A stretch of DNA of 64,000 nt from Podarcis erhardii (lineage: Eukaryota), in assembly GCA_964252035.1 (NCBI GenBank), contig OZ176200.1; one strand, 5' to 3'. Every line of letters begins with the position of its first letter. Positions within the stretch are counted from its first letter, which is position 1. Of this stretch, positions 1-64,000 are shown in pieces. The position numbers and the translations under genes are program-made. Under the pieces are notes generated by a model, which saw nothing but the letters and a program-made list of their open reading frames with translations, searched no databases and was not told where the DNA came from.

Positions 1-913
1 TCTGGGAGGCTTCCAACAAAATATTAAAATACAGTAATGCATCAAACATTAAAAGCTTCCCTAAACAGGGCTGCCTTCAGATGTCTTCTAAAAGTCTGGT
101 AGTTGTTGTTCTCTTTGACATCTGGTGGGTGGGCATTCCACAGGGCGAGCGCCACTACCGAGAAGGCCCTCTGCCTGGTTCCCTGTAACTTGGCTTCTCA
201 CAGTGAGGGAACCGCCAGAAGGCCCTCAGTGCTGGACCTCAGTGTCTGGGTAGAACCATGGGGGTGGAGACGCTCCTTCAGATATATTGGACTGAGGCCG
301 TTTAGGGCTTTAAAGGTCAGCACCAACACTTTGAATTGTGCTCGGAAACGTACTGGGAGCCAATGTAGGTCTTTCAAGACTGGTGTTATGTGGTCTCGGA
401 GGCTACTCCCAGTCACCAGTCTAGCTGCCGCATTCTGGATTAGTTGTACTTTCTGGGTCACCTTCAAAGGTAGCCCCACATAGAGCGCATTGAAGTAGTC
501 CAAGCGAGAAATAACCAGAGCGTGCACCACTCTGGTGAGACAGTCTGCAGGCAGGTAGGGTCTCAGCCAGCGTACCAGATGGAGCTGATAAACACAGAAT
601 TGACCTGTGCCTCCATGGACAGCTGTGAGTCCAAAATGACTCCCAGGCTGCATACCTGGTCCTTCAGGGGCAGTTACCCCATTCAGGACCAGGGAGTCCT
701 CCACACCCGCCCTCCTCCTGTCCCCCAAAAACAGTACTTCTGTCTTGTCAGGATTCAACCTCAATCTGTTAGCCGCCATCCATCCTCCAACCGCCTCCAG
801 ACAGTCACACAGACCTTCACCACCTTCACTGGTCCTGATTTGAAAGAGAGGTGGAGCTGGGTATCATCTGCATATTGATGGACACCCAGCCCAAACCCAT
901 TGATGATCTCTCC
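1..913 (-). mobile_element. L2-clade LINE, 3' part of ORF2 (frameshifted)
   Basis: Minus-strand ORF 198-779 contains LNPDKTEV and SRLDYFNALYVGLP...QNAAARLVTG...HITPVLKDLHWLPV, typical of the L2 RT C-terminus; same family type as 42202-42699. Confidence 0.85.
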
Positions 914-1776: not shown

Positions 1777-2598
1777 TGTCAGAGCTGCCTCTAGGTCCCA
1801 GCTCACAGAGGACCAACGCCAGGCTGATGTTATGTACAAAAGTCTTTATTGAAGTTTAATTTCCATTTCAAAGCCAGAGCGTGCAGCCCTACGTCTAGAC
1901 TCTAGATCGGCGAAGGCCCGTCTGAGTCTCCGCCCCTTCCACACCAGTTTAAGATCCTAGCCCTGCTTCACCTCCTGCGCTGCTCTCTTCTCCTCTGGGT
2001 CCTCCTGCCCTCTGGGGCATTGCCCTTTCTGGACTCTTCCAACGCTGAGTCGCTTAGCTCCTCCCCCTGCCTCCGGCGTGCTTTAGGACCCGGTTCCCAA
2101 TCCTCACTCTCTGCTGTCCCGCGCTCCTGTACATTTGAACTTGCTTCTCGCGCCAACCCAGTGACCTTTCTCCTAACCGTTACACTACTTCTATCACTCC
2201 TTCCCTCTTCCGTGACACTGGCCGGATCTGACCTCCCTTCCGTTGTCCGACTCTCCGAGGGAGGCGTGGTAGACTCTCCCTCGTCTCCTCTCCCTGGTGG
2301 GGAAAGCACTGGCCCCGATGCCTGGGACTCTTCCCCCCCACTCTGCTCTGGTGGGGAAGCAGGTCCTGATTTCCAACTACTGCTCTGGGAGTCCCTGCTG
2401 CCCCCTTGCTCCTGGGGCGTTCCCCTTGGGACCCCCCTGCCCCTGGCCACTGGCGCTCCCTTCTGTGAATCTTCCGATTCGCTGGAGAGGCTCATGGAAT
2501 CCCTCGGACCACTGTCCCCTCCTACGCTCCCTTCGGATTCCTCCCCCTCGCTCTCCATCTCCCATCTTCCCTGTGCCTCAGCTCCTGAGCCCCTGACA
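1777..2598 (-). mobile_element. Solo LTR, copy 1 (822 bp), LTR retrotransposon/ERV
   Basis: Termini TGTCAG...CTGACA; 5-bp target-site duplication CACAT (1772-1776 and 2599-2603); minus-strand AATAAA at 1845-1850 and TTAAA TATA-like box near 1948-1953; about 99% identical to 31154-31975. Confidence 0.9.
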
Positions 2599-3221
2599 CA
2601 CATGAATACTTCGGAGCAGAATAAACATGGCCATAATGTGAACTTCTACCAGTTTACCAAACGGCTGCCTCTGACTTGATGACACTTCTTTCCACTGAGA
2701 AACAGAGATTCTCAGTTGTTGTTGCATTCTGAATTTTGCTCAGAGGGGAGCACAGAATGGAAAGATCCATCACTAGGTTTAGAATTAGGGAGTAAAGCAA
2801 GTGCAATTTGAAACCCCCTCCATTACAGTCCCAACTGTGGCATGCCAGACATCCAACTCATGAATTCTTGGGAATCTTTTTTCAGATTTGTGTGGTATGT
2901 TCAAACACAGGCAAGATCAGCGATAGGGGCAGGGTTAAAAGGGGAAATTGGGGAGGTGAATGTGGCAGTTAGAGAGGACAGACTCCCTTGACTGCCTTGC
3001 TAATAGGATCAAGAAAAAATGAAAAGGAACTCAAGAACAGGCCCCAACAAAGACAATAGCAATGTTTCCCTGGGGCATTGCAGAAAGTGTGCATATATAC
3101 CACTCCCCTGTTTCTTTGTTTTTACAATGTCAAACAATTAAAGTGTTTCAATTGATTGGTCCCCTACTTTTTCATGTGATCCATTAATTAATTCCATAGA
3201 ATCTATCTACAAATGATTCTA

Positions 3222-22200: not shown

Positions 22201-25160
22201 CATAGTAGAGGGAGACGAGCTGCGTTCTCACAAGTCTGCCACAGGCATATATCCCTTTACTGCTTTTTTTAAAAAGATCTATTTATTTGAAATTGTTGAA
22301 TAAGCTGTAATGTGTGTGTGTGTGATTTTTTTTTAATAAAAAACCTAGCTCTTATTATTTGATCTGATTTTGCAATTTAGTTTCAAATATAGCAGAGCAA
22401 AACCTGAGTTTATTATGTACGCATACAGACTCTTCTTATTAAAATCTGAAGTGGGGCCATTGCATTTCAAGTTCGGATTTGGGGAATAGAAGAGGTTCAG
22501 CAGAAATTATCAGCATTAGCTTCCTGCAGCTGTAAACCTCCTTGAACTCAAGAGATGATGACTCAAGCACACTCATAGTTCATTCATTTCCTTAAATTGT
22601 TTGTTCTCCAGCTTCATGGGGATGGAGAGTTCAACAGTTAATTTCAATAGAAGTGTCAACACTCAAGCACAGCTGGGTATCAACCCATAAGCAATGAGAA
22701 TGCCATAATAATCATATTGTACATTGTATATACTGTATGTATGTACCGTATTTATGCAAATCTAATGTGCCATCGAATCTAATGCACACCTCAATTTTCA
22801 AAACCTTGAAAACAAAAAAGTATTTGCTGGCACCATCAAATCTAATGCACACCCTAATTTTTGTGAGGTCATTTGGCCAAAATGGTGCACATTCCATTCA
22901 AGTAAATATGGTATGTATAGTGATAGATAAATCAATATTAATACCAACAGTTGTGTTGCAAAAATGAGGGTACTGAGAAATGAAAATATTTAGGGGAAAA
23001 TATCTAAGGGGGTCTTTGTCCATGGAGTTTTCTTTGCAGGGATACTGGAGTGGCTTGCCAGTTCCTGCTCCAGGTGGATCATATTTGGTCAAAACTCTCC
23101 ACTATGACCTATCTGTCTCGGGTGGCCCTGCACAGCATAGCTCATAGCTCCTCTGAGTTATTCAAGCCCCTTTGCGATGACAAGGCAGTGGTCCATGAAG
23201 GATCATGGGCTCCATGAACATTGCAGATGGTGACAGCAGTCACGAAATTAAAAGACGCCTGCTTCTTGGGAGAAAAGCAATGACAAACCTAGACAGCATC
23301 TTAAAAAGCAGAGACATTACCTTGCCAACAAAGGTCCATATAGTTAAAGCTATGGTTTTCCCAGTAGTGATGTATGGAAATGAGAGCTGGACCATAAAGA
23401 AGGCTGATCGCCGACGAATTGATGCTTTTGAATTATGGTGCTGGAGGAGACTCTTGAGAGTGCCATGGACTGCAAGAAGATCAAACCTATCCATTCTCAA
23501 AGAAATCAGCCCTGAGTGCTCACTGGAAGTTCAGATCGTGAAGCTGAGGCTCCAATACTTTGGCCACCTCATGAGAAGAGAAGACTCCCTGGAAAAGACC
23601 CTGATGTTGGGAAAGATTGAGGGCACAAGGAGAAGGGGACAACAGAGGATGAGATAGTTGGACAGTGTTCTCGAAGCTACCAGCATGAGTTTGACCAAAC
23701 TACAGGAGGCAGTGGAAGACAGGAGTGCCTGGCGTGCTTTGGTCCATGAGGTCACGAAGAGTTGGACATGACCAAATGACTAAACAACAACATCTAAGGG
23801 GGTAAAAATATTCAGAAATAGCCCAGTGATGACTGAGAATGCCCAGAGGCCATGGAATTCTGAATGTCCATATGTGGGGGGCAGGGTTTGCAGGAGAAAA
23901 TATTGCAAAAACTAAGAGGAAACAAAGTGAATGTATTATCCTGAAAGTATGATTGATGGCTGGAACACTAAGCAGAAGCACTCCACATTTGTTACAGGTC
24001 CCAGTTGTCACTGCTGATATTTGAGAACCGATTGTGGCTTCTACACAGTAGTGAGGAAACAGCATTTTGCATGTGCTCAGTGGCATTATTACCATTTAGT
24101 CTTCACAAGTCCCTAGGGTGACACCTAAAGGGGTCTAGTCAAATGCTGTTTAGCACTATCTCCAACCAAGCATGGTTATTTTTGTAATGGCCCATGTCAG
24201 TTTGCTCTACAGATTTGCAGTGTAGTGTGCCACTCCCCTTCCCTGCATCATAGTCCTCCTACCCAAAGGGAATTCTCAAAACCCTTGCTTCTGAAATGAG
24301 TTTTTACTAGTAAAAACTATGTGCTGCTTTTAATTCTTGTAGGTCTACAGAGCTCTCACTTGTGGGAATTTGTAAGAGACCTCCTCCTGTCTCCTGAGGA
24401 GAACAGTGGTATTCTGGAATGGGAAGACAGAGACCAAGGCATCTTTCGAGTTGTTAAATCAGATGCTCTAGCAAAGATGTGGGGGCAAAGAAAGAAAAAC
24501 GATAGAATGACCTATGAAAAACTAAGCAGAGCACTCAGGTAAGCTATTTATTTAATCGGTATTATATAAGACAGCTGATTTCACAGTTTAACTCGTTCCA
24601 AATATTTATTTTTGTTATGCTGTATAATGCAAAGGTCATGAGACACAGCTATGGCTCTTTTGATTAAAGATAGGATCATGTTGCCAAATCTGTGAGTAGA
24701 ATAAATGAGGATAATGAGACATTAGTCAACAGATCATTTGCCAACCTACCTAATGAATATGCCGCTTAATACTATAACCTTACCATTTCCCTTGGCAACA
24801 ATCCTAGAATTTGACTCTGAACTGTTTTCTTAGGAAAACAAATGTAATGCACAGTGTTTCAAAAGGAGGGAGTTGAAAAGAGTCTGGGAAAGTGTTGAAC
24901 TCTGAGCAGTTTAACTGTGCTGTATGTGTGCAAGTTCCCCTTTGCCAGAAGACTAGAGTGGTCTCTCAAAAAGAATGTCTTATTGACTAGCATAGTAAAA
25001 CATTTAACATGGTACTGTATGTTAAAGCTGTTTCTAAGTCCAACTTCAATTTTGTTGTTGCAGATACTATTATAAAACTGGTATTTTGGAACGAGTGGAC
25101 AGGAGGTTAGTGTACAAGTTTGGAAAGAACGCACATGGATGGCAAGAGAGCAAGCTATGA
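13099..25160 (+). CDS. ELF5: ETS-related transcription factor ELF5, complete CDS in 6 exons (774 nt, 257 aa; 256 aa from the second ATG at 13102)
   Basis: Spliced product [14 protein letters not shown]...HPEY-like [21 protein letters not shown] (PNT) ... [20 protein letters not shown]...[38 protein letters not shown]. All introns are GT-AG and phases join in frame. Confidence 0.97.
15658..15909. mobile_element. Tc1/mariner (Tigger-like) MITE in an ELF5 intron
   Basis: TIRs cagtggtacctt / aaggtactagtg flanked by TA. Confidence 0.75.
17878..18111 (+). CDS. ELF5: ELF5 coding exon 2 (PNT/SAM domain, 234 nt)
   Basis: ggcag|GT TCT GAT...CAT G|gtcagt; [35 protein letters not shown]. Confidence 0.97.
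18580..18630 (+). CDS. ELF5: ELF5 coding exon 3 (51 nt)
   Basis: ctatag|GT GTC TCC TTC TTT CAC GAC...GAT T|gtaagt; [16 protein letters not shown]. Confidence 0.92.
19209..19581 (-). mobile_element. Sauria (Squam1) SINE, older variant with an internal insertion
   Basis: (ACCTTT)-type tail, core gtcatgtggccagcatgactaa and tRNA-like head; about 40 extra nt compared with the other copies. Confidence 0.85.
20049..20101. repeat. (CTCTTC)n pyrimidine microsatellite
   Basis: Direct inspection; the source of the RKRKRK, FLFLFL and GRGRG ORFs. Confidence 0.9.
21127..21195 (+). CDS. ELF5: ELF5 coding exon 4 (69 nt)
   Basis: ttccag|AT ATT GAT AAG GCA TGT...ACA A|gtaggt; (Y)[22 protein letters not shown], matching human CLKTSGIKSQD..SHSRT. 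Confidence 0.93.
21862..22045. repeat. Imperfect long inverted repeat (probable decayed MITE)
   Basis: Arms gggtggaactgtggagc...ctggatggggcag and ctgccccatcctgg...gctccacagctccaccc. Confidence 0.6.
22745..22870. mobile_element. Probable Tc1/pogo-type non-autonomous fragment
   Basis: Starts taccgtattt and has repeated aatctaatgcacacc subterminal motifs. Confidence 0.4.
23014..23791 (+). mobile_element. BovB (RTE) LINE insertion with an inverted 5' segment
   Basis: 23205-23657 encodes the BovB RT C-terminus ([28 protein letters not shown]...[16 protein letters not shown]) and runs to a (CAA)n tail; 23014-23204 is BovB 5' sequence in reverse; 12-bp TSD ATCTAAGGGGGT (23002-23013 and 23792-23803). 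Confidence 0.9.
24343..24538 (+). CDS. ELF5: ELF5 coding exon 5 (ETS domain, 196 nt)
   Basis: ttgtag|GT CTA CAG AGC...CTC AG|gtaagc; [28 protein letters not shown]...[10 protein letters not shown]. Confidence 0.98.
25064..25160 (+). CDS. ELF5: ELF5 last coding exon (97 nt to TGA)
   Basis: ttgcag|A TAC TAT TAT AAA ACT GGT...AAG CTA TGA; [31 protein letters not shown]. Confidence 0.97.
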
Positions 25161-31153: not shown

Positions 31154-31975
31154 TGTCAGAGCTGCCTCTAGGTCCCAGCTCACAGAGGACCAACGCCAGG
31201 CTGATGTTATGTACAAAAGTCTTTATTGAAGTTTAATTTCCATTTCAAAGCCAGAGCATGCAGCCCTACGTCTAGACTCTAGATCGGCGAAGTCCCGTCT
31301 GAGTCTCCGCCCCTTCCACACCAGTTTAAGATCCTAGCCCTGCTCCACCTCCTGCGCTGCTCTCTTCTCCTCTGGGTCCTCCTGCCCTCTGGGGCATTGC
31401 CCTTTCTGGACTCTTCCGACGCTGAGTCGCTTAGCTCCTCCCCCTGCCTCCGGCGTGCTTTAGGACCCGGTTCCCAATCCTCACTCTCTGCTGTCCCGTG
31501 CTCCTGTACATTTGAACTTGCTTCTCGCGCCAACCCAGTGACCTTTCTCCTAACCGTTACACTACTTCTATCACTCCTTCCCTCTTCCGTGACACTGGCC
31601 GGATCTGACCTCCCTTCCGTTGTCCGACTCTCCGAGGGAGGCGTGGTAGACTCTGCCTCGTCTCCTCTCCCTGGTGGGGAAAGCACTGGCCCCGATGCCT
31701 GGGACTCTTCCCCCCCACTCTGCTCTGGTGGGGAAGCTGGTCCTGATTTCCAACTACTGCTCTGGGAGTCCCTGCTGCCCCCTTGCTCCTGGGGCGTTCC
31801 CCTTGGGACCCCCCTGCCCCTGGCCACTGGCGCTCCCTTCTGTGAATCTTCCGATTCGCTGGAGAGGCTCATGGAATCCCTCGGACCACTGTCCCCTCCT
31901 ACGCTCCCTTCGGATTCCTCCCCCTCGCTCTCCATCTCCCATCTTCCCTGTGCCTCAGCTCCTGAGCCCCTGACA
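31154..31975 (-). mobile_element. Solo LTR, copy 2 (822 bp)
   Basis: TGTCAG...CTGACA with its own 5-bp TSD ACACC (31149-31153 and 31976-31980); about 7 substitutions versus 1777-2598. Confidence 0.9.
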
Positions 31976-33814
31976 ACACCCATTAGGATGCCACAACCAG
32001 TTATGTTTAGGACATGTGACAATGTAAAGACCTTTTCCTATATGGAAGTGAAAGCCAATTAGGACAATTATCATGTCTAGAACAACCTTCAGAATAACGG
32101 TGCTAAGTAAGAAAATTGACACAAAATGTACAGCCATCCTTCTGTCATAGAATTGCTCAGGATTAGCAAAGTCCTGTGAAGACAGGCAGGGCAATTGGTT
32201 GAAAATCCAGAGCTTTCTCCAGTGTTTTCAATTATTGAAGAATCACATCAAACAGTATGGAGAAAGGAGAGATTTCACTGCCGGGAGCCTGGACAATACC
32301 CAATGAATTTGATTATTATACATCAGCAAGGAATGGCTTGGTGACTTTAGACATGCATTCATTTTGCACGGTAAATTTACTGACAGAGAGTATATTGTAA
32401 GCAGTCTGAGAAAAGTTGCGGCTCCTTTCACAGAGTGAATCAGCATCTTGCTAGATATGTTAAAAGGTTTCATACAGTAGTTAAATTCTTCGTACTGCTA
32501 TAACAAGTGTGTCAAAGTCCCATGATAGTCATGCAAAAGTTCAAATGACTGGCAGGGACCCAAAAACCTACTTCAGATGTACACAGCAGCTTACATGCCC
32601 ACAATGGATTTTTTTTTGCACTTTTTAATTCAAATAGCAGGGTACATCAAACTCCCCAAAGTTTGAACAACATGTGGAACCGGAAGGGTTTACTTTGAGA
32701 AACATAAATTCCTCAACTCCAATGAGGAACTATTGGCATAGTTCTTTACATCAAGGATGATTGCTGCACACAAACAGTTTAAAATATTTTTTAAAAAAAT
32801 TCAAACTCTGGATGGATTTTATCAAATTCATCATACCTGCCTTTAAGTGAAACTTGGTAATTAAAAATAGGAACCCAGGAAGCAATATAGAATTGGTTTC
32901 CTGCACTTCCCAAGTAATTCAAAAGAGCAAATATTCACATTTTCTCCTTAAAAGAAGCTGATATTTCCTTGGATTTTGATCTTTCTCTTTCATCAACACA
33001 GTGGCATGATTCAGACATAATACCAAACTGGTTCAGTATTATCTGAAAATAGAATCATAACATGCAGGCTTCCTCCCCCAGGTTCCTCTTCTTCCTGTGT
33101 GTCACGATTTCTTAACTTACTTTTGTATTCTCAACAAACCCTAGAGCTCATCCAAACTTTCTTTTGTGTGAGTTTCTCAGGCATAGGTCCATGCTTTCCA
33201 GGTCCAGATCTGAGCGGTTGTTGATTGGAAGAAATGGCAATCAGGTTTCCCACAGGTTTATTTTTGTTCCAGTTCAGCAGTAAACAGCAGGTTCTCCCAG
33301 GGAAAGTGATGGGGGGGGGGAACCAAACCCTTGGATATGGACCTGCAAAGTGTAGACCTGTGCCTGCAAAGCTCAGCACGGATGGAAGTCTGAATAAGCC
33401 CACACCTTGGCATTTTGATCAAACCTGAGCTTTCTTCAAGCATTACAACATGAAGGGACACCCTGGGAGGTTAAGGTTCTTAATGGCATGAGCCACCTCT
33501 GCATGTAAAAAGAGACTCCCAGCTGTCAATGTTACAAGTGAAGATGGTGAAACTGGTATGAAGTGTAAAACAATGAGGACAGGACTAAAGGAACATCTCT
33601 ATCCTTAAACACCAGAACCTCTTATTACAAAGATATGCTTACCTATGAATTTGTTCTTTTTGTGCTGCCTTGGCTTGTTCCTAATGTTCAAAATTAAGTG
33701 TGCTGAAATATTTAACTGTATATGTGCCTTTTGACATGTTCCGCTTTCACAGCTGAATATGCGAATTTGTCATCCATCTTTGTTTGTCTTCACTGGGGTG
33801 CTTACATGCTGTCA

Positions 33815-42174: not shown

Positions 42175-42907
42175 AATAGTTCTCTCCCTGACCTAGCCAC
42201 TGTGATCCATGCGATGGTCACCTCCAGACTGGATTATTGTAACTCGCTCTACGTGGGGCTGCCCTTGAGACTGACCCAGAAACTCCAGCGGGTGCAGAAT
42301 GCCGCGGCGAGACTCCTTATGGGGTCTTCGCTGCGAGATCACATTCATCCGGTACTATACCAGCTGCACTGGCTCCCGGTGGAGTACAGGATCAGGTTTA
42401 AGGTGCTGGTTTTAACCTTTAAAGCCCAATACGGCCTAGGACCCTCGTACCTACGGGACCGCCTCTCCTGGTATGCCCCACAGAGAAACCTACGGTCTGC
42501 AAATAATAACATCCTCAAAGTCCCAGGCCTCAGAGAGGTTAGGCAGGCCTCAGCTAGAGCCAGGGCCTTCTCGGCTGCGGCTCCAATCTGGTGGAACGCT
42601 CTGTCACAAGAGACTAGGGCCCTGCGGGACCTGACATCCTTCCGCAGGGCCTGCAAGACAGAGCTGTTCCACCAGGCCTTTGGTCAGGGCGCAGCCTGAC
42701 TCCCTCCTCTGGCAACCTGCACAGAATCTTGCTTAATCGGTTGCCATTAATTTGATTTTAATTAATTTTTATAATGAAATATTTTTAGAGTGTGATTATT
42801 TGATTGTTTGATTATTTGATTATTGTTAGCCACCCTGAGCCCGGCTTCGGCTGGGGAGGGCGGGATATAAATAAAATTAATTATTATTATTATTATTATT
42901 ATTATTA
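42175..42907 (+). mobile_element. L2-clade LINE 3' end, relatively young
   Basis: Uninterrupted 165-aa ORF (TSRLDYCNSLYVGLP...LHWLPVEYRIRFK...KTELFHQAF), 3' UTR and (ATT)n tail. Confidence 0.9.
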
Positions 42908-47560: not shown

Positions 47561-48239
47561 CCTGTCCAATTCCTGGTTTCTCTTCAGTTAGTATAACTCT
47601 TTCGCCTTTTACCAACAATTGAATTCCTGCAGGATTCAGCAATTAGAAGGGACTCAGACATACAGCCTAACACACACCACAAACTTGCAACACTGCTATA
47701 CAGGTAAGTACCGTACATTTTCATCACAACATTTCATTTATTTATTCATAAAAAATATTTATACACCACATATAGATCTTTATCACAGAAGGTTACAACA
47801 ATATAAAAACATAAAACCAAAAATAAAAAATTAAACAAGTTTAAAAGGCAAAAGGAAATAAATAAAAAATATTGATAGACTGTGTGTGTGTGTGTACCAA
47901 TCAGGAAGTCTGTGTTACTTCTTTTCTGGTTATCTTTAATTTTTACGAGAATTAAAGCTAAGGCTGCAATTCCAGACACGTTTGTTCCCTATTCCGCCTC
48001 ACCGACCACACTGGAGGTTGGGAAGAGATTCCTCTCGGCAGCAGCTGAAGAGCTCTTGACTATGGTTAGATATTTAGCTCTCTGCACATAGCGATTGCCC
48101 ATTGATGAAAACATGTGTTGCAAGAGGGACCGATGTTATGCAAAGGGAGATAACGATCATTATACTTAATTGGTGTTCAGAGCAAAGAAAGAAAAGCTCC
48201 ACTTAGCTGAGCAAGTAAGTCCAAATAGAAAAGGTGTGA

Positions 48240-48560
48240 ATTTTACTACTTACCAATAGCCGTTGGGGAAGGAGCTCTGGCCAATCAGGAACGAGAAGGG
48301 GCGGGGCTTGGGGCTGCTTACCTTTCCTTGCTCTCGCATCCTGCGCCTCCTCAGCGCCGGGCAAGAGGACGAGGTGAGCGCGGAGTGCGCTGCGCGCCAA
48401 GCGGGAGTCGCTCCGCAGAAGTCATTCGCCTCTTTCCCAAGAAGCTCGTCGCTGCCAAAAGTCATCCTCGCGGCCATCTCGAGAAATGGCCGAGAGCCGG
48501 GACCCTGCTAGCGAGCAGCTGAAGCGCTGGCAAGAACTGCGGGGCTCGCAGGTACAGAAG
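48240..48560 (+). promoter_or_regulatory. CAT: CpG-rich TATA-less catalase promoter and 5' UTR
   Basis: CCAAT boxes at 48253-48257 and 48281-48285, perfect Sp1 box GGGGCGGGGC at 48298-48307, dense CpG (continuing to about 48900), strong Kozak context gagaaATGG. Confidence 0.8.
48486..48551 (+). CDS. CAT: Catalase exon 1
   Basis: [22 protein letters not shown]|gtacag (human [22 protein letters not shown]). Confidence 0.93.
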
Positions 48561-51500
48561 AAAGCCCCCCCCCCCCTAAAAAAAATCCATTGGCACGTTC
48601 CACGCAGCGCGCGCGCTAAGTATTTGGTCTGCATTCAGTGGGCTAAGTAGCTGCATCAGGAGGCAGTTAGGCGGGCGCGACCACCACCTGAGAGGCGGCG
48701 GGGGTGGAGTTGGATGGTGACGGTTGGTAAGGACCATAGGAGTGGTGCTTCCCTCGACTTAGAGTGGAGAGTTACAATCCACTGTCAATCTCGGGTGCTG
48801 TTAACGGGAAAGAAGGAACCAAGTGTCCAGTGCTCTTTGGGGTGGGCGGGCCCAAGTGCCCACGAGGGCCAGGTGAGCCCCTTGGGGAGACCTTATAGCT
48901 ATAGAAGGGAATAGGGCTTCCGTGTCCTTAATAGCTAGGCAGCAGAGGTGAGCATAGTCTTTTTGGAAGATAAGCTGCAAAGAGGTTCTTTAAACGTGGG
49001 CCAAATGCAATTTAAAAATGTTCAAAGCCTGGGATTTCTGTTGGCATCAACTTTAGGCTGCAATCTTAGAAGCCCGATTGAAAAAGATGGAATGTGCTTC
49101 TGAGTAGATATGTTCAGTATTATCCCCACCCCCCACCCCTTAAATTTATCACCCACTTTTCCTTTGTCATAAGTGCAAAGCAAGATATTTAGTTCTTTTT
49201 TTTACAAAATTTATTAAAGTTTTCAAAAAATAATACAATGTAAAATAAAAAGAAAAAATAACAAAAATACAAAAATACAAAAATAATTAAAAACACATAG
49301 AATTTCCATTACCCGGTACTTATTTTCTTTTAACTTATTTTCCAGACCTCCTCATACCTCCCTTTCTTGTATTCCAATTCAAATTGTTAGTTAGGCAAAT
49401 CCTCACCATTAGTTTTTAGTTACAGGTAGGTAGCCGTGTTGGTCTGCCATAGTCAAAACAAAATAAAAAAATTCCTTCGAGTAGCACCTTAAAGACCAAC
49501 TAAGTTAGTTCATTAGTTTTTACTTATTTCTAAACCTTTTTTTCATATCTCTTAAGCATTACAGCTGGAGACCACTTAATTTCTGTCCAACATCTTGGTC
49601 AGCCATCCAGTCACTAACTTCACACAGACCTGCTTAACTTCAGCTAAGGAACTTCATGACCCTTTGGACCAAACCCTGGGGCCGTTTGATGCTCTAAGCT
49701 GGCTTACTGGTGCCAGGGGCGGACTTTGGTAATATGGTGACCTGAGCGAGGACAAAATTTGGTGCTCCCCCCCAAAAAAAAGTTCTAATTTTCACAATAA
49801 TTACTTTGATACAATTGGTTCTAATGATTGAATACCACTTTCTGAGTTGCGCCTTGTGATGTGCTGTGCCAAGACCTGCTTAATCTTGTTTTTAAGTTGT
49901 ATTCATTCAATTTGTTTTTATTATTGCTTGTTAGCCGCCCTGAGCCAGGCCTTGGTTGGGGAGGGTGGGGTATAAATAAAAATTATTATTATTATTGAAG
50001 TGCCTCGCCTCTGTGCCTTGTGCCGTCAACCGCACCACCCTAAATCTGGCGCTGTTGCTGCACATCAGCACATGCAAATGTTAAATGTTGGGGTTGTGTG
50101 TTTCAGACTATTCTTGTTGCCTATTTTTAAGGTGATGTAACGAAGCCAAACGGCATTTAAAGATGGGCTTACCTTTGTGTGAGTGATGCTACCTGTGTTC
50201 TAAATTGAAATGTATGTTGCATATCCTTCTTAAAAAGGCACCTATTCTCTAGTGGTAGCCTTTGAAGAATTTCTTCCTAGTTTGTGGGAAGGCTCGTATC
50301 TGACCTGTTGTGACACTATTTGAATTCTACTTCAGCAACTTATTTCATTTTGCAGGGGAAAGTCTCTCAGAAATGGACCCTGGAAATGGCTGTGCATACC
50401 CTTGTTGTTTACTGATACAGTTCCATACATTGGCATTGTAACTGAAAGATTAGCCAGTTTATTTGCTATAAGAGAGAAGCTTCAATGTATTATTCTTTAG
50501 TTTGTTGATAATCCTAACAAAATACATGAAAACAGACCACAAAATAATACCAAGTACATTAGCTATCAGATTCTAGTGCCCAAGTGAATCTTTATTGCCT
50601 TGGTAAATGTAGCAAATTTTAATACAGTTTGAATGATTCTACTGAAATAATTTTAACCACTACGGTAGCAGAAATACAGTAAAGAATGTGCTATATTTCT
50701 GTTTGCACTCACTTGTATAACAGCAGAACCTCTGTGATAGATACGTTTTTATCATATACCTCCTAGACTTTAATGCAATCAAAGTGTAGGAAGTATATGA
50801 TTAAAGCATAGTTATGCAGAAGTACTGATTTTATGCAAGTTAAGATTATCCCACTGCCTGAGGAGGGGGTGAAAATATTTAGTTTACTACTATGAACTAA
50901 GGAATATTTAATATGTCAGTTTACAGATTTAATAGAGCATAGAGTAATTTAATAGAGCATTTATTTAAGGAATTTATATCCAACCTTTCAAAAAGTTCCC
51001 ATGATAGCTTACAAAATTTTCTAATTGCAATACCAGAATTTTAAAATATGGATAATTTCATGACTTAATTATACTTGTTGACCAGAGGGGTGTATAAGCA
51101 TATGAGAAAATGTGTCTTCCCAGAAGAATCCACTTCTCAGTTACACCCTTCAATTACAGAAGTCCATACCTTGCTCTTTGAGAAACGTTGGCATATAGGA
51201 TCAGGGCTTTTAAATTTTACTTGTAAAAGGGAGACAAAGGCAGGGATTCTTATTTTCTGAAAAGCTTTTGATCAGCGTATATTTTGGAATATATTTACAG
51301 ACTGAATATATGTTGTACTATTTCCAAAATTGGGGTGGTTGTATGAAGGCATGTGTATGTGCTTTTTACATCATTTAAATATATATATATATAATTTTAA
51401 AAACAATGACCTTAAGTTTTTTTTAAAAAAATCATCAAAATGAAACATGTACCTACAGTATTTTACAAGCAAATGTGTTTAAGTCTTGACATCCAAATCT

Positions 51501-57500: not shown

Positions 57501-60500
57501 CAAAAGCTCTGTCGGTCTCTCTGCTAGCTATGAATAACCTGCAACTATGAATGTTAATGTAGGCATAACCTGCAGTTTTCTACAGTGAAATTTGGCCTGC
57601 ATCCATATTTCCATTGGTTAGTTTTAGCGCAGTAGATAGTTGTTTATTAAACAAATTGAATATTGGTTTGTATGTAGCTGAAGCTTGGTTGGCTGAGCTG
57701 TGCCCCCAAAGCAACTCACAGCAAATATTCAAAGCACCAAAATACAGAGCTTTGGAAATACAAGTATACAAAACATAGAACGTGTCAGTAAATTCAAAAC
57801 TGACAAAAATCAATGATTTGGCAAACGGAAAAAATTCAGTGTCACCAAAAAAAACCTCACCAACCTAAGCTTAAGTACATAAATACAAAGCAAAATAAGA
57901 AATAACCAACAGCAAAGTTTCTGTTCTGTTCTGGCTGTACTCCAAGGAGCCAGAAGGAGAGCGGTAGATAGCAAACAGCTAGCTCCCACATCATTCTCCC
58001 GAAAGGCAAATGTTGGTAGGGCAATGATGGTAAGCCTCTGGGAAGTACCAAATGTTGGTGCAGGTATTGCTACACTTATGGTGCCTTAGAAGCCATAATT
58101 GGGCATTTTATTTGTTTTCAGTGTTCTTTAAAAAAAAGTATTTATTGAACACATATTTACAGTAAAGGCAAGCCCTGATAAATAGTTGCTGCCTGTATTA
58201 AACAACCCAAAATATCCGAGTCTTATATTACACAAACAGAATTTGCTATGGAAATATTATAAAAAGATACATTTAGCCTTTAGTAATAGACCATGTGTAA
58301 TATCCATGACGTAGGCTGGAAATTCAATTGCTTTTCATGCCTCAGGCTTTAAATTATTAACTTTTCATAATTTGCTGGAAAACCAAGCAGTCTATTCTGT
58401 TAAGCTTATTTTGAAAGCTTAAAGGTAAAGCATAAACACAATTAAGTACTTAATTACTATGCGCTTCAAAATCTGGTGACATTCAAGTTTGGAGGTGCAG
58501 CAGGATGTTACTTATTCAACTATTTCTGCCTCAACATTAATTTAATAATGAGAACTCTTTGAAATGGTTTTCCTTTTTTCACATTTCTATTGGTTCTATT
58601 GCTTTTTTAACATCTAGATTCTAATTACATGCAAACCTAACCTCTCCTAATAATTCCTATTATAAAATGATTGAGTTTAATGCTGGGAGTAATTTTCCCT
58701 GTAGTGTAAGAAAGCATATTACATCATATGTCTGTCAAATTAACCTATAAGCACATTCACTAAACGACAAAAAAAGTAAAAAGCCAAGTGTACTTTTCCT
58801 TGTTCTAGTCTTGATGTTTTTTTCCCTTTTGTAATTAGAAACCAGATAACGTGACCACAGGAGCTGGTATCCCAGTGGCAGACAGTTTAAATCTCTTGAC
58901 CGTGGGTCCACGAGGCCCTCTTTTGGTTCAGGATGTGGTTTTCACAGATATGGTGGCAAACTTTGACCGAGAGAGGATTCCAGACAGAGTTGTACATGCC
59001 AAAGGAGCAGGTTAGTGTTAGAAGTTGCTTGTTGTTTTATAAAATGAAAAGATGGAGAATTAAATATTATGAACTGGTTTTGTGTACAGAGGGAACAAGA
59101 AAGCAAAGAAGTTCCCAGAATGTGTTTCACTCAGTTTTGTAGTTCTGGACTTACGTTGTTATACCAAGAACGTGACTCCTGCTGTGGGCCTCAGACAAGC
59201 TCTGCACGGGCCTGCTTCAGACACAATTCTCAGCCAAATAATGGCCCAGCACCCAGCAGAGTAGCAAAAGCAGGAGTAGTGAAACAACCGTATTCTCCCA
59301 TCTCTCTTTGGTGTACCAGCACACTGCATGTTCAACTTTAAACTATAGTTAAGCTGAACTATGATTTAAAGTGGTGAGCAAACCAAGGCATTGTGTGAGA
59401 GAGTGAAAAAGAAGAGTTGCTTCTGCAAGCATCTATACGTAAAGTGTCCTTTTCCTTCATCTGAGGGAGAAAATAGGCCAAAACATTAGCAACGATACAC
59501 CCAAGAAAAGCAGAGATCTTCCCCCAACTGTCTTGGTCTGTGTATCAATGCTTGGCAACTGATAGTTGTTCGAACTTTGCCTGCATTCTGATTGATCTCT
59601 ACAGTTATCTCCTGAATAGTTTCCCCTTATTAAAAATTAGTTCTCTGTTAATTATGAATCCAACAAAATTTTGGCCAGTTGTTGTACCTTGTCCTTTATT
59701 TGCAGCCTGGAATCAGATAATTTTACTGAAGTACATGGTGTTTAGACTGCTTGTTTTTGCTTATATTCAGTTTTTAATAAAAAGCAACCATTTTAAACAT
59801 TTTAGGAGCTTTTGGCTATTTTGAAGTGACTCATGACATCACCATGTATTGCAAAGCAAAGGTATTTGAGCATATTGGCAAAAGAACTCCAATCGCTATG
59901 CGATTCTCTACTGTTGGTAAGTCTTTAAAAAACACCTCTTTGTGTGTCCATTTTATTTGTGTCATGTGTACACATGCATTCATTAAATGGGTACTCAGAG
60001 GAGCTAATTTTGTTAGACTTTCTTCGTGCATTATTTAGGAGCTATTGGCTATTTTATAGTGACTCATTGCCAGCTCTCAGCAAACCAAACTAGGAAATGA
60101 TTGTGCAATGAACTCTTCCCATTCCGTTCTTCTTAAAAACTATAAATGGCAACATATAGGTGCAATCATCAGCATAATCCTTTGAATTGGTGCTTTATGA
60201 ATGAATGAATTAATGAATGAATGAAACTTTATTCGTGTCACCCATTGGCCATAGCAACACAAGAACATTACAATATACACAAAACAAAGTTGATTATATA
60301 AAACACAGTTTAGGGTTCTGAGTCAGCGGTCAAATAGTGGACCTTATTCTGATTGCCCCAGCTAAAAACCTTGCAACCTTTGTTGCCATCTGCTCCTCTT
60401 GATCTGCCAGGATCAAGATCATGCCTGGTGCTTTATAACATTCATTAGGTGAAGGCTAGGAGGGCAGTTTACACGTGATGGCCCTGGTATGTGCAGTTCA

Positions 60501-63500
60501 TGCTTTTCATAGCTGCGTCCTCGAAGCAGCTATGTGAGCCCTTTGCATGACTGGCTTTGAACTTAAATGTTTCGTACTAAATTCCCAGTATTAGAATGGA
60601 TGCCAGTCTCCAGGGTTGAAGGAAAACTGTGTGCAGTTCTCAGTGTGCTCACGTTTATAAACCTTCCTTTTCTAGCTGGAGAATCGGGGTCAGCCGATAC
60701 AGTCCGTGACCCTCGAGGCTTTGCAATGAAATTCTATACAGAAGATGGTAACTGGGACCTTGTGGGGAACAACACCCCCATCTTCTTTGTCAGAGATGCA
60801 ATGCTGGTAGGTCAACTCATGACATGTTTATTTGGGCACCCAAAATAAGTTAATGGGTGGTGAACAAAATACAGTACCTGAATCTGTTTCTTCTGTGGGG
60901 CTTATTTTTAAAAATCAAATTACTGTTCCTGTCACCCAGAGGAATCATCTGCTAACATAAAGCACCTTTCTGTTAGCTTCTGAATGGTCATAATTATTGT
61001 TTTTGTCCAGATGTGTATTCTCTGTAATTTGAGCATTGAGGTTGCCTTTCAGTGTTTCAGTTCAGATTTTTTAATTAAGGTGAGCACATTCAAGTGATGC
61101 TCTGAAAAATGAGCTGCTTGCTCAAATGTTTGCAAGCAATATGGATTGCAGTATGAATTGCCTGAGAGGGATCGTTGAATCAGCCAGACTGCCCTGGAGA
61201 GCAAGTTCCAAAGAACATTCTAAAAAAATTAGAAACCTTTATCTCTGAGCACATTCACCTTTGAAAATCATTGGGTGCTTGTGGACTGAAATGGGAGGTG
61301 TTCCCTTCTATACACTGGGTTCGGACCATTTAAATCTTTAAAGATTAACGCCAGCACTTCAGATTGTGTCAAGAAAAGCAATGGAAGCCATACAGTTGCT
61401 TTAGTGCTGGTGTAATTTTCTCCTCCACTCATTTTGTTAATTAAAGTGACGGTTGCATTTTCACTAGTTGAAGTCTTCTCGTAAAATCTTCAAAGCCAGG
61501 CTGCTGGGTGTTGCAACATACATTTTGGAGCAGCTGTAACCAGTATATTGACCAAACCTATCTGAGAATCCAGAAAGCATAATGGACTCAACACTGCTCC
61601 CCAAATTACAAACCTGTTCCTTCAAGAGGGGCAGGGAGGGCATAAGTTCCATTGTTCATTTATCCTCTCCCTATGAACATCTCTGTCTTGTCAGGGCCGA
61701 GTTTCAGTTTTTTGTTTTTGTGAACAAATGTAGTTTCTCATGAGTTTTGTCAAAGTTTAACAAAATAGGAATAAGCAGGAGGATATAATATTGCAGTTTT
61801 CAGGATCTCTTGATGATTGTCCCAAACAATCACTGCTCTCTTGATTGTTTTTAAGATTTATCATTGCTCAAAGTTCAGATATATTGAACTTGCTTCACAG
61901 ATAAAAGACAACTTAGAATAAGGGATGTACACAGTAATGTATTTTTCATTTGTATTTTGATTGTATTAGTTCATGTCCTTTATCCACACTCAAAAGAGAA
62001 ATCCTCAAACTCATCTGAAAGACCCAAACATGGCATGGGACTTCTGGAGTCTTCGCCCTGAGTCTCTGCACCAGGTAGGATTTACTCTTTCTATCCCGTT
62101 TTTTCTTTGCCTCACTGAGAGCCAGTGTAGTGTAGTGGTTAAGAGCGGTAGTCTCGCAATCTGGTGAACCGGGTTCGAGTCCTCTCCCCCACATGCAGCT
62201 GCTGGGTGACCTTGGGCCAGTCACACTTCTTTGAAGTCTCTCAGCTGTACTCACCTCACAGAGTGTTTGTTGTGGGGGAGGAAGGGAAAGGAGAATGTTA
62301 GCTGCTTTGAGACTCCTTCGGGTAGTGATAAAGCGGGATATCAAATCCAAACTCTCTTCTTCTTCGCAGACTGAGACAACTTTGTTTCCTCCGTGTATCC
62401 TGTGTGCACCTTGGGACATAATTTTCTGGCTCTCTCAGATGGATTATGTGGAAACGAGATATTGCACTATTGATGTAGGGCAAAGGCTTCAGGAGTGAGG
62501 GCAGAATATTATGCTGAAAATTAATTATGGCTGGAGCATTCTTCAGTGCAGAGAAGTCCAAAAGTGTACTTGGTTTTAGTTATGTGAGTTTCACTGAGGA
62601 TAGCCGAGATAGATTTGTTAGTTTCTTGGTAGTGTCGCCCTCCCTGTGGAACACCTCCCTTCAGATGGCAAGCAGCTAAAGAATTACACAACTTTTAGAA
62701 AACATCTGAAGGCAGGTATTGGGAGGCTTTTAATGTTTTATGGTTTTTTATTATGTTTTTAGATATGCTGTAAGCTGCCCAGACTGGCTGGGAAAACCCA
62801 GCCAGATGGGCGAGGTATAAATAATAAAATTATTATGATGATTTGTTGCTTTATTTTTAGGTGTCGTTCCTGTTCAGTGATCGCGGCATTCCAGATGGAT
62901 TTCGTCACATGCATGGCTTTGGATCTAATACTTTTAAGCTGGTAAATGCTGGAGGAAATGCCATATACTGCAAATTTCATTTTAAGGTAATAATTTCAGT
63001 TTTCCTGTTCAGCACTTGTTAATAAACATTTCCTACTTCTAAATCAGTATTACTGGAATATTAACATGTTGTTTACTTTACATGGTTTTGAAAATGTAGT
63101 TTTGCATTCCTAGTCTTATAAGATTTTCATATGATGCTTCAGTTTCTACATACAGACTGGTCTCCTTAATAATTTTAATATTTTTTCTTTCATTGTTACT
63201 AGTATGCAATTCTTAAGCAAAAAAAAAAAAATTTAATGGAAATTTCTAAGTGATGTTATTTTGATTTTTACAGACTGATCAGGGAATCAAAAACCTTACT
63301 GTTGAAGAAGCAGGAAGACTGGCCTCTGAAGATCCCGACTATGCTCTGCGTGATCTTTACAACGCTATTGCTAATGCAAACTATCCTTCATGGAGTTTCT
63401 ATATCCAGGTTATGACATTTGAACAAGCTGAGGCATTTCCATTCAATCCTTTTGATGTAACTAAGGTAAGCATAATTCCCATTCCTTTATCCTACATATT

Positions 63501-63739
63501 GGATATAAGGAATACAAGTTCTGCATTTCTATGGAAATATTTACGTGGAAACTATCTGTAATAAATTGTATTATTGCATTTTATAGGTTTGGCCTCACAA
63601 AGACTACCCTCTTATCCCAGTGGGGAAGGTTGTCTTAAACAGAAACCCTGTCAATTATTTTGCTGAGGTAGAACAAATTGCCTTTGCTCCAAGCAACATG
63701 CCTCCAGGAATTGAACCTAGCCCTGATAAAATGTTACAG
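48486..63739 (+). CDS. CAT: Catalase (CAT or a diverged CAT-like paralogue), coding exons 1-8, partial; continues beyond the window
   Basis: Eight GT-AG exons of 66, 172, 111, 131, 105, 126, 192 and 153 nt, the same sizes as human CAT; 352 codons without stops; catalytic H75, S114, D128 and N148 (human numbering) retained. Confidence 0.95.
49190..49560 (-). mobile_element. L1 3' UTR fragment with a nested Penelope-like piece (49419-49510)
   Basis: A-rich L1 tail like 47740-47880; insert ttacaggtaggtagccgtgttggtctgccatagtcaaaac...agtagcaccttaaagaccaac flanked by duplicated CATTAGTTTTTA (49407-49418 and 49511-49522). Confidence 0.6.
49597..49643 (-). mobile_element. Degenerate 5S rRNA-derived segment (SINE3-type relic)
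   Basis: Minus strand ctgaagttaagcaggtctgtgtgaagttagtgactggatggctgacc resembles the 5S internal control region gaagctaagcagggtcgggcctggttagtacttggatgggagacc (about 70%). Confidence 0.4.
49714..50054. mobile_element. Probable non-autonomous DNA element with a nested L2 tail (49884-49997)
   Basis: Imperfect TIRs caggggcggacttt / taaatctggcgctg; no clear TSD. Confidence 0.35.
52817..53926 (-). mobile_element. LTR-like / Ngaro-DIRS-type terminal repeat region interrupted by a SINE
   Basis: About 330 nt is roughly 70% identical to 56400-56740; the 53600-53926 part has minus-strand CCAAT and TTTAAA promoter-like motifs; no TSD found. Confidence 0.5.
53193..53540 (-). mobile_element. Sauria SINE nested in the repeat above
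   Basis: 11-bp TSD AATAAGGCTTA (53182-53192 and 53541-53551). Confidence 0.9.
54660..54752 (+). mobile_element. L2-type 3' terminus
   Basis: gccacccagagtggctggggaaacccag...ggtataaac with (AAT)n tail; same family as 62745-62843. Confidence 0.7.
55905..56135. mobile_element. RTE fragments in opposite orientations
   Basis: 55905-55965 matches the tailed end of 9109-9720 (minus); 55975-56135 encodes [38 protein letters not shown] (RTE ORF C-terminus, plus). Confidence 0.6.
56135..56283 (+). mobile_element. Sauria SINE 5' half
   Basis: ttgccgatcagaaggtcggtggttcaaatccc...gtgcaagtagataaatagg. Confidence 0.8.
56330..56900 (-). mobile_element. Tyrosine-recombinase retrotransposon-like (Ngaro/DIRS) 3' remnant with the end of an SGNH-hydrolase ORF
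   Basis: Minus ORF ends [41 protein letters not shown] (SGNH block V DxxH), followed by the repeat shared with 52890-53600. Confidence 0.6.
58839..59010 (+). CDS. CAT: Catalase exon 2 (172 nt; distal His75)
   Basis: [57 protein letters not shown]; aattag|...G|gttagt. Confidence 0.96.
59806..59916 (+). CDS. CAT: Catalase exon 3 (111 nt)
   Basis: (G)[36 protein letters not shown]. Confidence 0.96.
60197..60420 (-). mobile_element. LINE 3' end with a (TTCA)n-type tail
   Basis: Minus frame [26 protein letters not shown], typical of a non-LTR ORF2 terminus; (TGAA)n at 60197-60225. Confidence 0.45.
60676..60806 (+). CDS. CAT: Catalase exon 4 (131 nt; Asp128, Asn148)
   Basis: (A)[43 protein letters not shown]. 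Confidence 0.97.
61970..62074 (+). CDS. CAT: Catalase exon 5 (105 nt)
   Basis: [35 protein letters not shown]|gtagga. Confidence 0.96.
62117..62365 (+). mobile_element. tRNA-derived squamate SINE (Squam3-like)
   Basis: A box gtgtagtggttaagagc, B box gggttcgagtcc, body ctgggtgaccttgggccagtcac, (TTC)n tail. Confidence 0.8.
62745..62843 (+). mobile_element. L2-type 3' terminus abutting the catalase exon 6 acceptor
   Basis: gctgcccagactggctgggaaaacccagccagatgggcgaggtataaataataaaattattat; same family as 54660. Confidence 0.7.
62861..62986 (+). CDS. CAT: Catalase exon 6 (126 nt; NADPH-site and charge-relay region)
   Basis: [42 protein letters not shown]|gtaata. Confidence 0.96.
63274..63465 (+). 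CDS. CAT: Catalase exon 7 (192 nt)
   Basis: [64 protein letters not shown]. Confidence 0.96.
63587..63739 (+). CDS. CAT: Catalase exon 8 (153 nt)
   Basis: [51 protein letters not shown]|gtaagg. Confidence 0.96.
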
Positions 63740-64000
63740 GTAAGGAGTATAGTATTTTTATATTTATTTCATAGTCAAAAGCCTTACTGAAATCAATATG
63801 CATTATGTCCACGGCACACCCTGATCCACCAAGCCTGTAACTCTATCAACAAAAGAAATCAGATTTGTTTAATATGACTTGTTTTCAGGAAAACTGTGCT
63901 GGGTCTTAGTAATCACAGCATCCTTTTTAAAGTGCTCAACTATTTAATTATCTGTTCTAGAACCTTTCCTGGTATCGACGTCAAGCTGACTAATCAGTAG

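Follow-up and report, generated by a model that had tools for sequence, protein, structure and literature searches.

A stretch of 64,000 nucleotides from Podarcis erhardii (GenBank assembly GCA_964252035.1, contig OZ176200.1; hereafter the window) carries the first eight exons of catL, which, judged from its sequence, is the second catalase gene of lacertid lizards and is distinct from the ordinary CAT orthologue. catL is an inverted duplicate of CAT. A burst of amino acid replacements came after the duplication, and purifying selection has acted since. The gene appears to encode an intact, conserved and working haem catalase, probably cytosolic, with altered redox handling; this is the reading considered likely here. 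The window ends at position 64000 inside catL. Exons 9-13 of this genome lie beyond it, and the traits encoded there were read from orthologues.

An earlier first-pass annotation of the window had recognized exon 2 as an open catalase exon with canonical splice sites, and the translation and exon borders bear this out. The exon is flanked by ag and gt, its remaining two frames are closed, and its translation, identical to the peptide given then, includes [11 protein letters not shown] and [22 protein letters not shown]. A phmmer search of exon 2 against solved structures matched the bovine and human catalases (E ~1e-24), and within the conserved block the mismatches to these PDB sequences are only those listed in the annotation. 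All frames of exons 1-8 are open and every splice junction is canonical. The start codon in exon 1 has a purine at -3 and a G at +4; exon 1 lies ~10 kb upstream of exon 2, within the CpG-richest kilobase of the window, and the window contains no N letters. The spliced exons encode 352 residues without a stop, which align without gaps to residues 1-352 of 527-residue catalases, so that human numbering can be used as it stands. (When single exons were aligned with one full-length catalase in MAFFT, the fragments were misplaced, and another alignment was used.) Exons 2-8 each match Pfam PF00199, collinearly over profile positions 1-325 (E 1e-11 to 1e-23), and a 508-residue orthologue (P0161) matches PF00199 at E 2e-193 as well as PF06628.

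A database search seeded with the window exons gives two kinds of lacertid catalase, of 508 and 527 residues. The 508-residue protein, named "catalase-like" or "catalase", is present in Podarcis muralis, P. raffonei, P. lilfordi, Zootoca vivipara and Lacerta agilis. Over the 352 residues, the window protein differs from it at 2 positions in P. raffonei, 3 in P. lilfordi, 7 in P. muralis and 11-12 in Zootoca and Lacerta; its identity to the lacertid 527-residue CAT is 88.6%. The window gene is therefore the 508-residue catL, to which this genome adds two private replacements, K93M (AAG to ATG) and V230I. The suggestion that the paralogue might be undescribed stands only in part. RefSeq and Ensembl already hold models of the same gene (XP_028584112.2, XP_053244117.1, XP_034977129.2, XP_033005793.1), where it is known under automatic names and has no described function, and full-text literature searches turned up no paper about a catalase paralogue of lacertids or anoles. 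A library of representatives at 50% identity, queried with exon 2, gave just fragments and distant catalases (best 83%), among which the paralogues were not separable.

Gene arrangement was read in five lacertid genomes (P. muralis, P. lilfordi, P. raffonei, Zootoca and L. agilis). In all five, catL and the 527-residue CAT stand tail to tail, with their coding ends ~3-5 kb apart, in the order ABTB2(-) CAT(+) catL(-) ELF5(-). CAT adjoins ABTB2 in P. muralis and P. lilfordi, the two genomes fetched with that flank, as it does in other vertebrates. The canonical place and ancestral orientation next to ABTB2 are held by the 527-residue gene, and catL, the inverted copy, lies toward ELF5. An ETS exon upstream of catL on the same strand (Pfam PF00178 (Ets), E 2e-22) is consistent, by its position, with ELF5, and catalase appears head to tail behind ELF5 in the window because it is the inverted copy that adjoins ELF5. 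The presence of a canonical CAT with ancestral residues beside catL establishes that the gene is a paralogue, as had been proposed, and refutes the explanation, of negligible probability, that it is an ordinary single-copy reptile CAT with unusual residues that reflect normal differences between lineages. Positions 33 and 36 (Ile33, Ala/Gly36) are indeed variable in vertebrate CATs, but K38, E60, M61, H63 and E71 are retained in the CATs of squamates, birds, turtles, mammals, amphibians and fish; the possibility raised beforehand that single-copy reptile CATs share the derived residues is contradicted by the canonical squamate proteins.

The replacements were placed against 35 canonical vertebrate and 6 invertebrate catalases. 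About 230 residues are invariant across the 35 vertebrate proteins sampled. Sixteen positions conserved at 90% or more are replaced in the catL proteins compared, and 13 of these fall inside the window (L27V, K38S, E60M, M61V, H63N, E71D, I155V, P162M, D180N, N213H, Y215F, H218N and D335A). Y370F and F409Y lie past its end, in orthologue exons. The last of the sixteen, H364Y, is not confined to catL: P. muralis CAT likewise has Tyr364, whereas P. lilfordi CAT has the usual His364, a difference that may reflect exchange between the paralogues or polymorphism. Eleven replacements are at sites invariant in the 35 canonical catalases, and most of these sites do not vary in the six invertebrate proteins either. 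Seven substitutions had been reported in exon 2, and five of them are indeed at constant or nearly constant sites: K38, E60, H63 and E71 are invariant across the vertebrate and invertebrate sets, M61 is 94% conserved, and the lacertid 527-residue CAT retains all five. The other two, N33I and G36A, are not distinctive, Ile33 being frequent in sauropsids and position 36 variable. Changes reported in exons 5 and 6 were confirmed by residue checks. Position 71 is the [EQ] site of a PS00438-type active-site pattern, and the window protein with Asp71 fails that signature, as the annotation stated; Glu occupies the position in 336 sampled catalases and Asp in 11, all 11 of them lacertid catL. Val74 and His75, also said to be kept, are present in the window translation.

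Several of the derived codons differ from the ancestral ones at two or three nucleotides (K38S, AAG to AGT; E60M, GAG to ATG; P162M, CCA to ATG; H209F; A236F), and these codons are identical in four other lacertid genomes. The exon 2 changes recur in five other lacertid assemblies, with the exception that L. agilis keeps Met61 and Gly36. Sequencing error, which had been named as a possible refutation, is therefore excluded. L. agilis catL also has Ile162 where the remaining copies carry Met, and V74I beside the catalytic His75; all other catalases compared have Val at position 74.

The clustering of changes in exon 2 that the first-pass annotation described is strong when measured as a rate and modest as a count. 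In this exon the nonsynonymous distance (dN) between catL and CAT is 0.116 at a synonymous distance (dS) of 0.18, compared with 0.008 at dS 0.46 between lacertid CAT and Elgaria CAT, which marks a normally extreme constraint. By count, exon 2 holds 8 of the 34 replacements fixed on the catL stem where 3.9 would be expected (P=0.035, with no correction for 12 exons). Eight fixed stem replacements are in the threading arm (residues 5-70), with M61V (not in L. agilis) and, at the arm's end, E71D in addition. According to PMC6885225, the arm is hooked through the partner subunit's wrapping loop (380-438) and lies over the haem belonging to the other dimer. Stem changes were weakly enriched in arm and wrapping loop combined (P=0.025); 5 of 13 CAT-stem changes also lie there, and the test was given no weight.

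The largest difference, missed by the first-pass annotation, is the loss of the peroxisomal targeting signal, which would be encoded past the window end. catL has counterparts of CAT exons 1-12; a counterpart of exon 13, which encodes the C-terminal -SNL/-ANL signal of CAT, is absent. The catL transcript models of four species instead have a new terminal exon in which an ag acceptor is followed by GGATGA, that is, one Gly codon and a stop, with AATAAA ~120 nucleotides later. Conserved across species, this exon shows no alignment with CAT exon 13. The catL orthologues are 508 residues long and end in -KKG, lacking the KANL-type peroxisomal targeting signal (PTS1) of canonical peroxisomal CAT, whereas squamate CATs end in -SNL, -ANL, -SHL or -SQL. 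In the orthologues, the check advised for the downstream exons showed Arg354 and Tyr358 present and the targeting signal lost. In mammalian catalase, KANL is the PTS1 and the active tetramer forms in the cytosol (PMC7498260). An alternative 3' exon yielding a signal-less isoform in squamate CATs generally was also considered and dropped, as the 512-residue snake and skink isoforms keep a C-terminal signal.

Selection on the gene changed with the duplication. Branch changes were counted by parsimony against three references, two lacertid CATs and that of Elgaria. The ratio of nonsynonymous to synonymous changes is 40:16 on the catL stem (omega, the corresponding rate ratio, ~0.70), 11:18 on the CAT stem (omega ~0.17) and 31:52 in the catL crown (omega ~0.17), and Fisher's exact test distinguishes the catL stem from both the CAT stem (P=0.0047) and the catL crown (P=0.00012). 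Among six lacertid catL copies pairwise omega is 0.05-0.19 at dS 0.05-0.15; the window and P. raffonei copies, for example, differ by dN 0.0024 and dS 0.0535. The four orthologues that were mapped have all 13 exons intact. The earlier expectations of a gene that is functional, in the evolutionary sense, and of a shift after duplication are both upheld. The pattern fits a functional shift and falls short of proof for adaptation.

A burst of change followed by renewed constraint excludes a pseudogene, and the wider alternative of a decaying duplicate, a relaxed pseudogene or a product of assembly errors is very improbable. The stem omega, the missing PTS1 exon, the failure to recover any transcript fragments, and the replacements private to this genome could each be taken for signs of decay. 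They are outweighed by the open frames of eight exons in the window and all 13 in the orthologues, by the low omega between species, by derived residues fixed across genera, and by the conservation of the new terminal exon with its poly(A) signal.

The catalytic core is retained, as are the residues of the NADPH rule. Those of the haem and catalytic site in the window are Arg72, Val74, His75, Arg112, Ser114, Asn148 and Asp348; those of the channels are Val116, Asp128, Pro129, Phe153, Phe154, Phe161, Phe164, Ile165, Gln168 and Trp186; and those of the site for reduced nicotinamide adenine dinucleotide phosphate (NADPH) are His194, Ser201, Arg203, Lys237, Trp303 and His305. The orthologues (P0161, P0323, P0324) carry Arg354, Tyr358 and Arg365 and match a PS00437-type haem-ligand pattern. 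Other positions near these sites are altered. Judged by bovine and human structures, N213H, Y215F and A236F would be in or close to the NADPH pocket and the route from it to the haem, a region for which mutagenesis of Proteus F194 and F215 has reportedly been carried out. P162M and D180N flank the segment with the main-channel residues Phe161, Phe164, Ile165, Gln168 and Trp186. NADPH binding follows a rule of Arg203 together with His or Gln at 305 (PMC9687031), under which binding by catL is still predicted. The proximal charge relay behind the Tyr ligand runs Arg354-His218-Asp348 (PMC4696219); in the window it is altered by Asn218 in place of His218, with Asp348 intact. Tyr369 of bovine liver catalase has been reported as a radical site (PMC12403174), and catL Y370F would correspond to it, assuming the usual offset of one residue in numbering.

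These features show how catL arose and suggest what it may do. An inverted partial duplication stripped the targeting exon from a copy of CAT; the copy kept its catalytic machinery, fixed many replacements at constant sites, and then came under conservation. Its product would be a haem catalase that remains in the cytosol. That it works as such is proposed because the distal and proximal catalytic residues, the three arginines at the haem propionates, and the main-channel and Arg203/His305 residues are kept, and the cytosolic location because the C-terminal signal is missing. Redox handling off the main pathway is probably altered, through the relay (H218N), the NADPH pocket (N213H, Y215F, A236F) and the candidate radical site (Y370F). 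The changed arm (K38S, E60M, M61V, H63N, E71D) could adjust the contacts within the tetramer or the way the neighbouring haem is covered, and possibly restrict mixing of catL with canonical CAT. Retuned relay, NADPH side and arm may suit the enzyme to the cytosol or change how inactive intermediates are avoided.

Several points weigh against this account. Tyr358, Arg354 and the missing PTS1 were read in orthologues that differ from the window protein at 2-12 of 352 residues. Transcript-derived fragments were sought with residues 1-200 of the orthologue, and none exceeded 89% identity. H218N, and V74I in L. agilis, could signal a lower or changed catalatic activity; catL might enter peroxisomes piggy-back on CAT; concerted evolution of the whole gene could give the look of a young duplication; and the stem omega is as compatible with relaxed constraint as with adaptation. 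In a different explanation, catL is no longer a true catalase and serves as a haem protein of mainly peroxidatic or oxidase chemistry, or as a partner in mixed tetramers that alters the import or stability of CAT. In its favour, H218N disrupts a conserved proximal relay (PMC4696219), Y215F, A236F and Y370F alter candidate residues of the electron or radical path, the changed arm lies over the neighbouring haem (PMC6885225), and the V74I of L. agilis adjoins the catalytic His. This explanation is nevertheless improbable, if less so than decay of the gene, given that catL retains His75, Asn148, Ser114, Tyr358, Arg354, Arg72, Arg112, Arg365, Asp128 and the phenylalanines of the channel and that purifying selection over the full length suits an enzyme.

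The simplest reading of the sequence comparisons is that the duplication took place in the lacertid lineage, after its split from Toxicofera and before the radiation of Podarcis, Zootoca and Lacerta; it is based on intron similarity, synonymous distances and DNA trees. catL and lacertid CAT differ by dS 0.24-0.25, and their introns are collinear over 7.2-7.6 kb at 76-78% identity. Either gene differs from Elgaria CAT by dS 0.46-0.51, with 2.2-2.3 kb of collinear intron at ~71%, and from the Anolis 512-residue gene catL, lacertid CAT or Elgaria CAT differ by dS 0.51-0.68, with less than 0.2 kb. Between lacertid genera, catL differs by dS ~0.09-0.11 over its full length, and the P. muralis and L. 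agilis genes have 18.7 kb of collinear intron alignment at 90.6%. In the window, similarity to CAT begins ~80 bp upstream of the ATG and is collinear from there. DNA trees from all codon positions and from third positions alone unite lacertid CAT and catL with support of 100/100. Protein trees fail to place catL (69/40 for catL with lacertid CAT). A second catalase gene was not seen in Elgaria within 10 kb downstream of CAT. The region 63171-63769, compared with CAT (L005:45123-46329), is 90-92% identical across exons 7-8 and their flanks versus 72-80% elsewhere, and may be a short gene-conversion tract.

Signal-less catalases are also found in anoles. Anolis sagrei has a head-to-tail array of CAT (ending -ANL, beside ABTB2), two genes for 523-residue proteins and one for a 512-residue protein. 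The 523- and 512-residue proteins whose sequences were read (A. sagrei, and the 512-residue protein of A. carolinensis) are without a peroxisomal signal; in the 523-residue gene it was lost by an early stop inside the homologous exon 13. The anole paralogues differ by dS 0.33 from anole CAT and by 0.58-0.77 from the lacertid genes, and the anole clade has support of 100/100 in DNA trees. By these sequence comparisons, they are duplicates independent of catL. The A. sagrei 523-residue protein shares D180N, H209F, N213H, Y215F, H218N and K228N with catL and also replaces K38, M61 and P162; across the signal-less anole paralogues this set is shared wholly or in part. The anole paralogues retain E60, H63 and E71, and E60M, H63N and E71D are unique to lacertids.

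Such sharing might instead be inherited from an old duplication common to anoles and perhaps other squamates, with the lacertid copies later homogenized by gene conversion. A clade of catL with the signal-less anole genes is tolerated by the protein data in the approximately unbiased (AU) test (p-AU 0.315), the exon 6 motif is the same as in A. sagrei 523 (F209, H213, F215, N218, N228), and local signs of conversion are seen in the exon 7-8 region and in the differing residue 364 of P. muralis and P. lilfordi CAT. An old duplication is unlikely, however. The DNA trees support the lacertid pair and the anole clade, and the AU test on DNA rejects a joint clade of catL and the anole paralogues (p ~1e-37 to 1e-41). 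The introns of the two lacertid genes remain similar and collinear along their entire length, also next to exons 5-6; the lacertid genes form an inverted pair and the anole genes a head-to-tail array; and PTS1 was lost with exon 13 in the former and by an early stop within it in the latter. The codon backgrounds are lineage-specific (TTC vs TTT at 215, AAT vs AAC at 228), and the second catalase looked for in the Elgaria interval was not seen.

The overlap of replacements between catL and the anole protein was assessed over 313 sites that show conservation of 90% or more among canonical CATs and hold the ancestral residue in squamate CATs. Of the 16 such sites replaced in catL, seven are also replaced in the anole protein versus 1.9 expected (hypergeometric P=0.0011), and at invariant sites the overlap is 4 versus 1.0 (P=0.011); both P values are indicative only, rate variation among "conserved" sites being unmodelled. 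It may tentatively be suggested, as a possibility short of an even chance, that an untargeted catalase evolved at least twice in lizards, in lacertids and in anoles, and that the same replacements (D180N, N213H, Y215F and H218N, with K38, M61 and P162 also hit) were selected both times, rewiring the relay and the NADPH-to-haem path. If this is true, these proteins would form a new functional class of vertebrate catalase that differs in the handling of compounds I and II or in peroxidatic activity.

The canonical vertebrate CAT (human or bovine erythrocyte/liver catalase, small-subunit clade 3; PDB 1DGF, 7CAT) has the fold PF00199 plus PF06628, exons 1-12 in common with catL, and 83-89% identity to it over residues 1-352. 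catL differs from it in lacking exon 13 and PTS1, in E71D, in K38S, E60M, M61V and H63N, in P162M and D180N, in N213H, Y215F, H218N and A236F, and in Y370F and F409Y. Second catalases are also found in amphibians, where 'catalase-like' paralogues of 503-534 residues occur in frogs, salamanders and caecilians on long stem branches, and the tails read (Xenopus laevis, Ambystoma) are without a KANL-type end, as in catL. They form their own clades in a quick tree and have almost none of the catL replacements, whereas catL nests within squamate CATs. The X. laevis paralogue P0299 is probably of the Xenbase cat.2 type. Signal-less catalase paralogues seem to have arisen several times in tetrapods. 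In mammals catalase is a single gene (PMC7498260). Yeast CTT1 and C. elegans ctl-1 are untargeted catalases beside a peroxisomal paralogue (discussed in PMC7498260), which catL would resemble in principle, although the yeast and nematode duplications are unrelated to it.

catL is of interest for enzymology in that it replaces residues that enzymologists have singled out (His218, Tyr215, Tyr370, the threading arm and the peroxisomal signal) while under selection. The partial repeat in anoles yields a short list of substitutions bearing on the role of bound NADPH and of the proximal relay, and the comparison also bears on how hydrogen peroxide removal is divided between cytosol and peroxisome.

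Table 1. Positions of catL exons and other elements in the window
Feature	Position	Strand	Content
Open frame, presumably LINE-like	198..779	-	
GC-rich element, first copy	1968..2679		
Open frame, presumably LINE-like	23205..23657	+	
ETS exon	24348..24539	+	
GC-rich element, second copy	31279..32062		
Open frame, presumably LINE-like	42202..42699	+	
CpG-rich 5' region around exon 1, likely catL promoter	48001..49000		GC 0.55, CpG observed/expected 0.71, the window maximum
catL exon 1, codons 1-22	48486..48551	+	starts [11 protein letters not shown]; found by motif scan; ATG, gt donor
catL exon 2, codons 23-80	58839..59010	+	S38, M60, V61, N63, D71; R72, V74, H75 retained
catL exon 3, codons 80-117	59806..59916	+	R112, S114 retained; M93 private to this genome
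catL exon 4, codons 117-160	60676..60806	+	D128, N148, F153, F154 retained; I155V
catL exon 5, codons 161-195	61970..62074	+	P162M, D180N; H194 retained
catL exon 6, codons 196-237	62861..62986	+	H209F, N213H, Y215F, H218N, K228N, A236F; S201, R203, K237 retained; I230 private to this genome
catL exon 7, codons 238-301	63274..63465	+	zero fixed changes on catL stem
catL exon 8, codons 302-352	63587..63739	+	W303, H305, D348 retained; D335A; gene extends past window end

Beyond the catalase gene and the ETS exon, the window holds two GC-rich copies of a ~0.7 kb element, which have long, near-identical open frames on both strands, rich in Ser, Glu and Gly, and are probably an interspersed repeat. 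Three further open frames resemble the reverse transcriptase C-termini of long interspersed nuclear elements (LINEs) of the BovB/RTE and CR1/L2 types, and fit a squamate genome.

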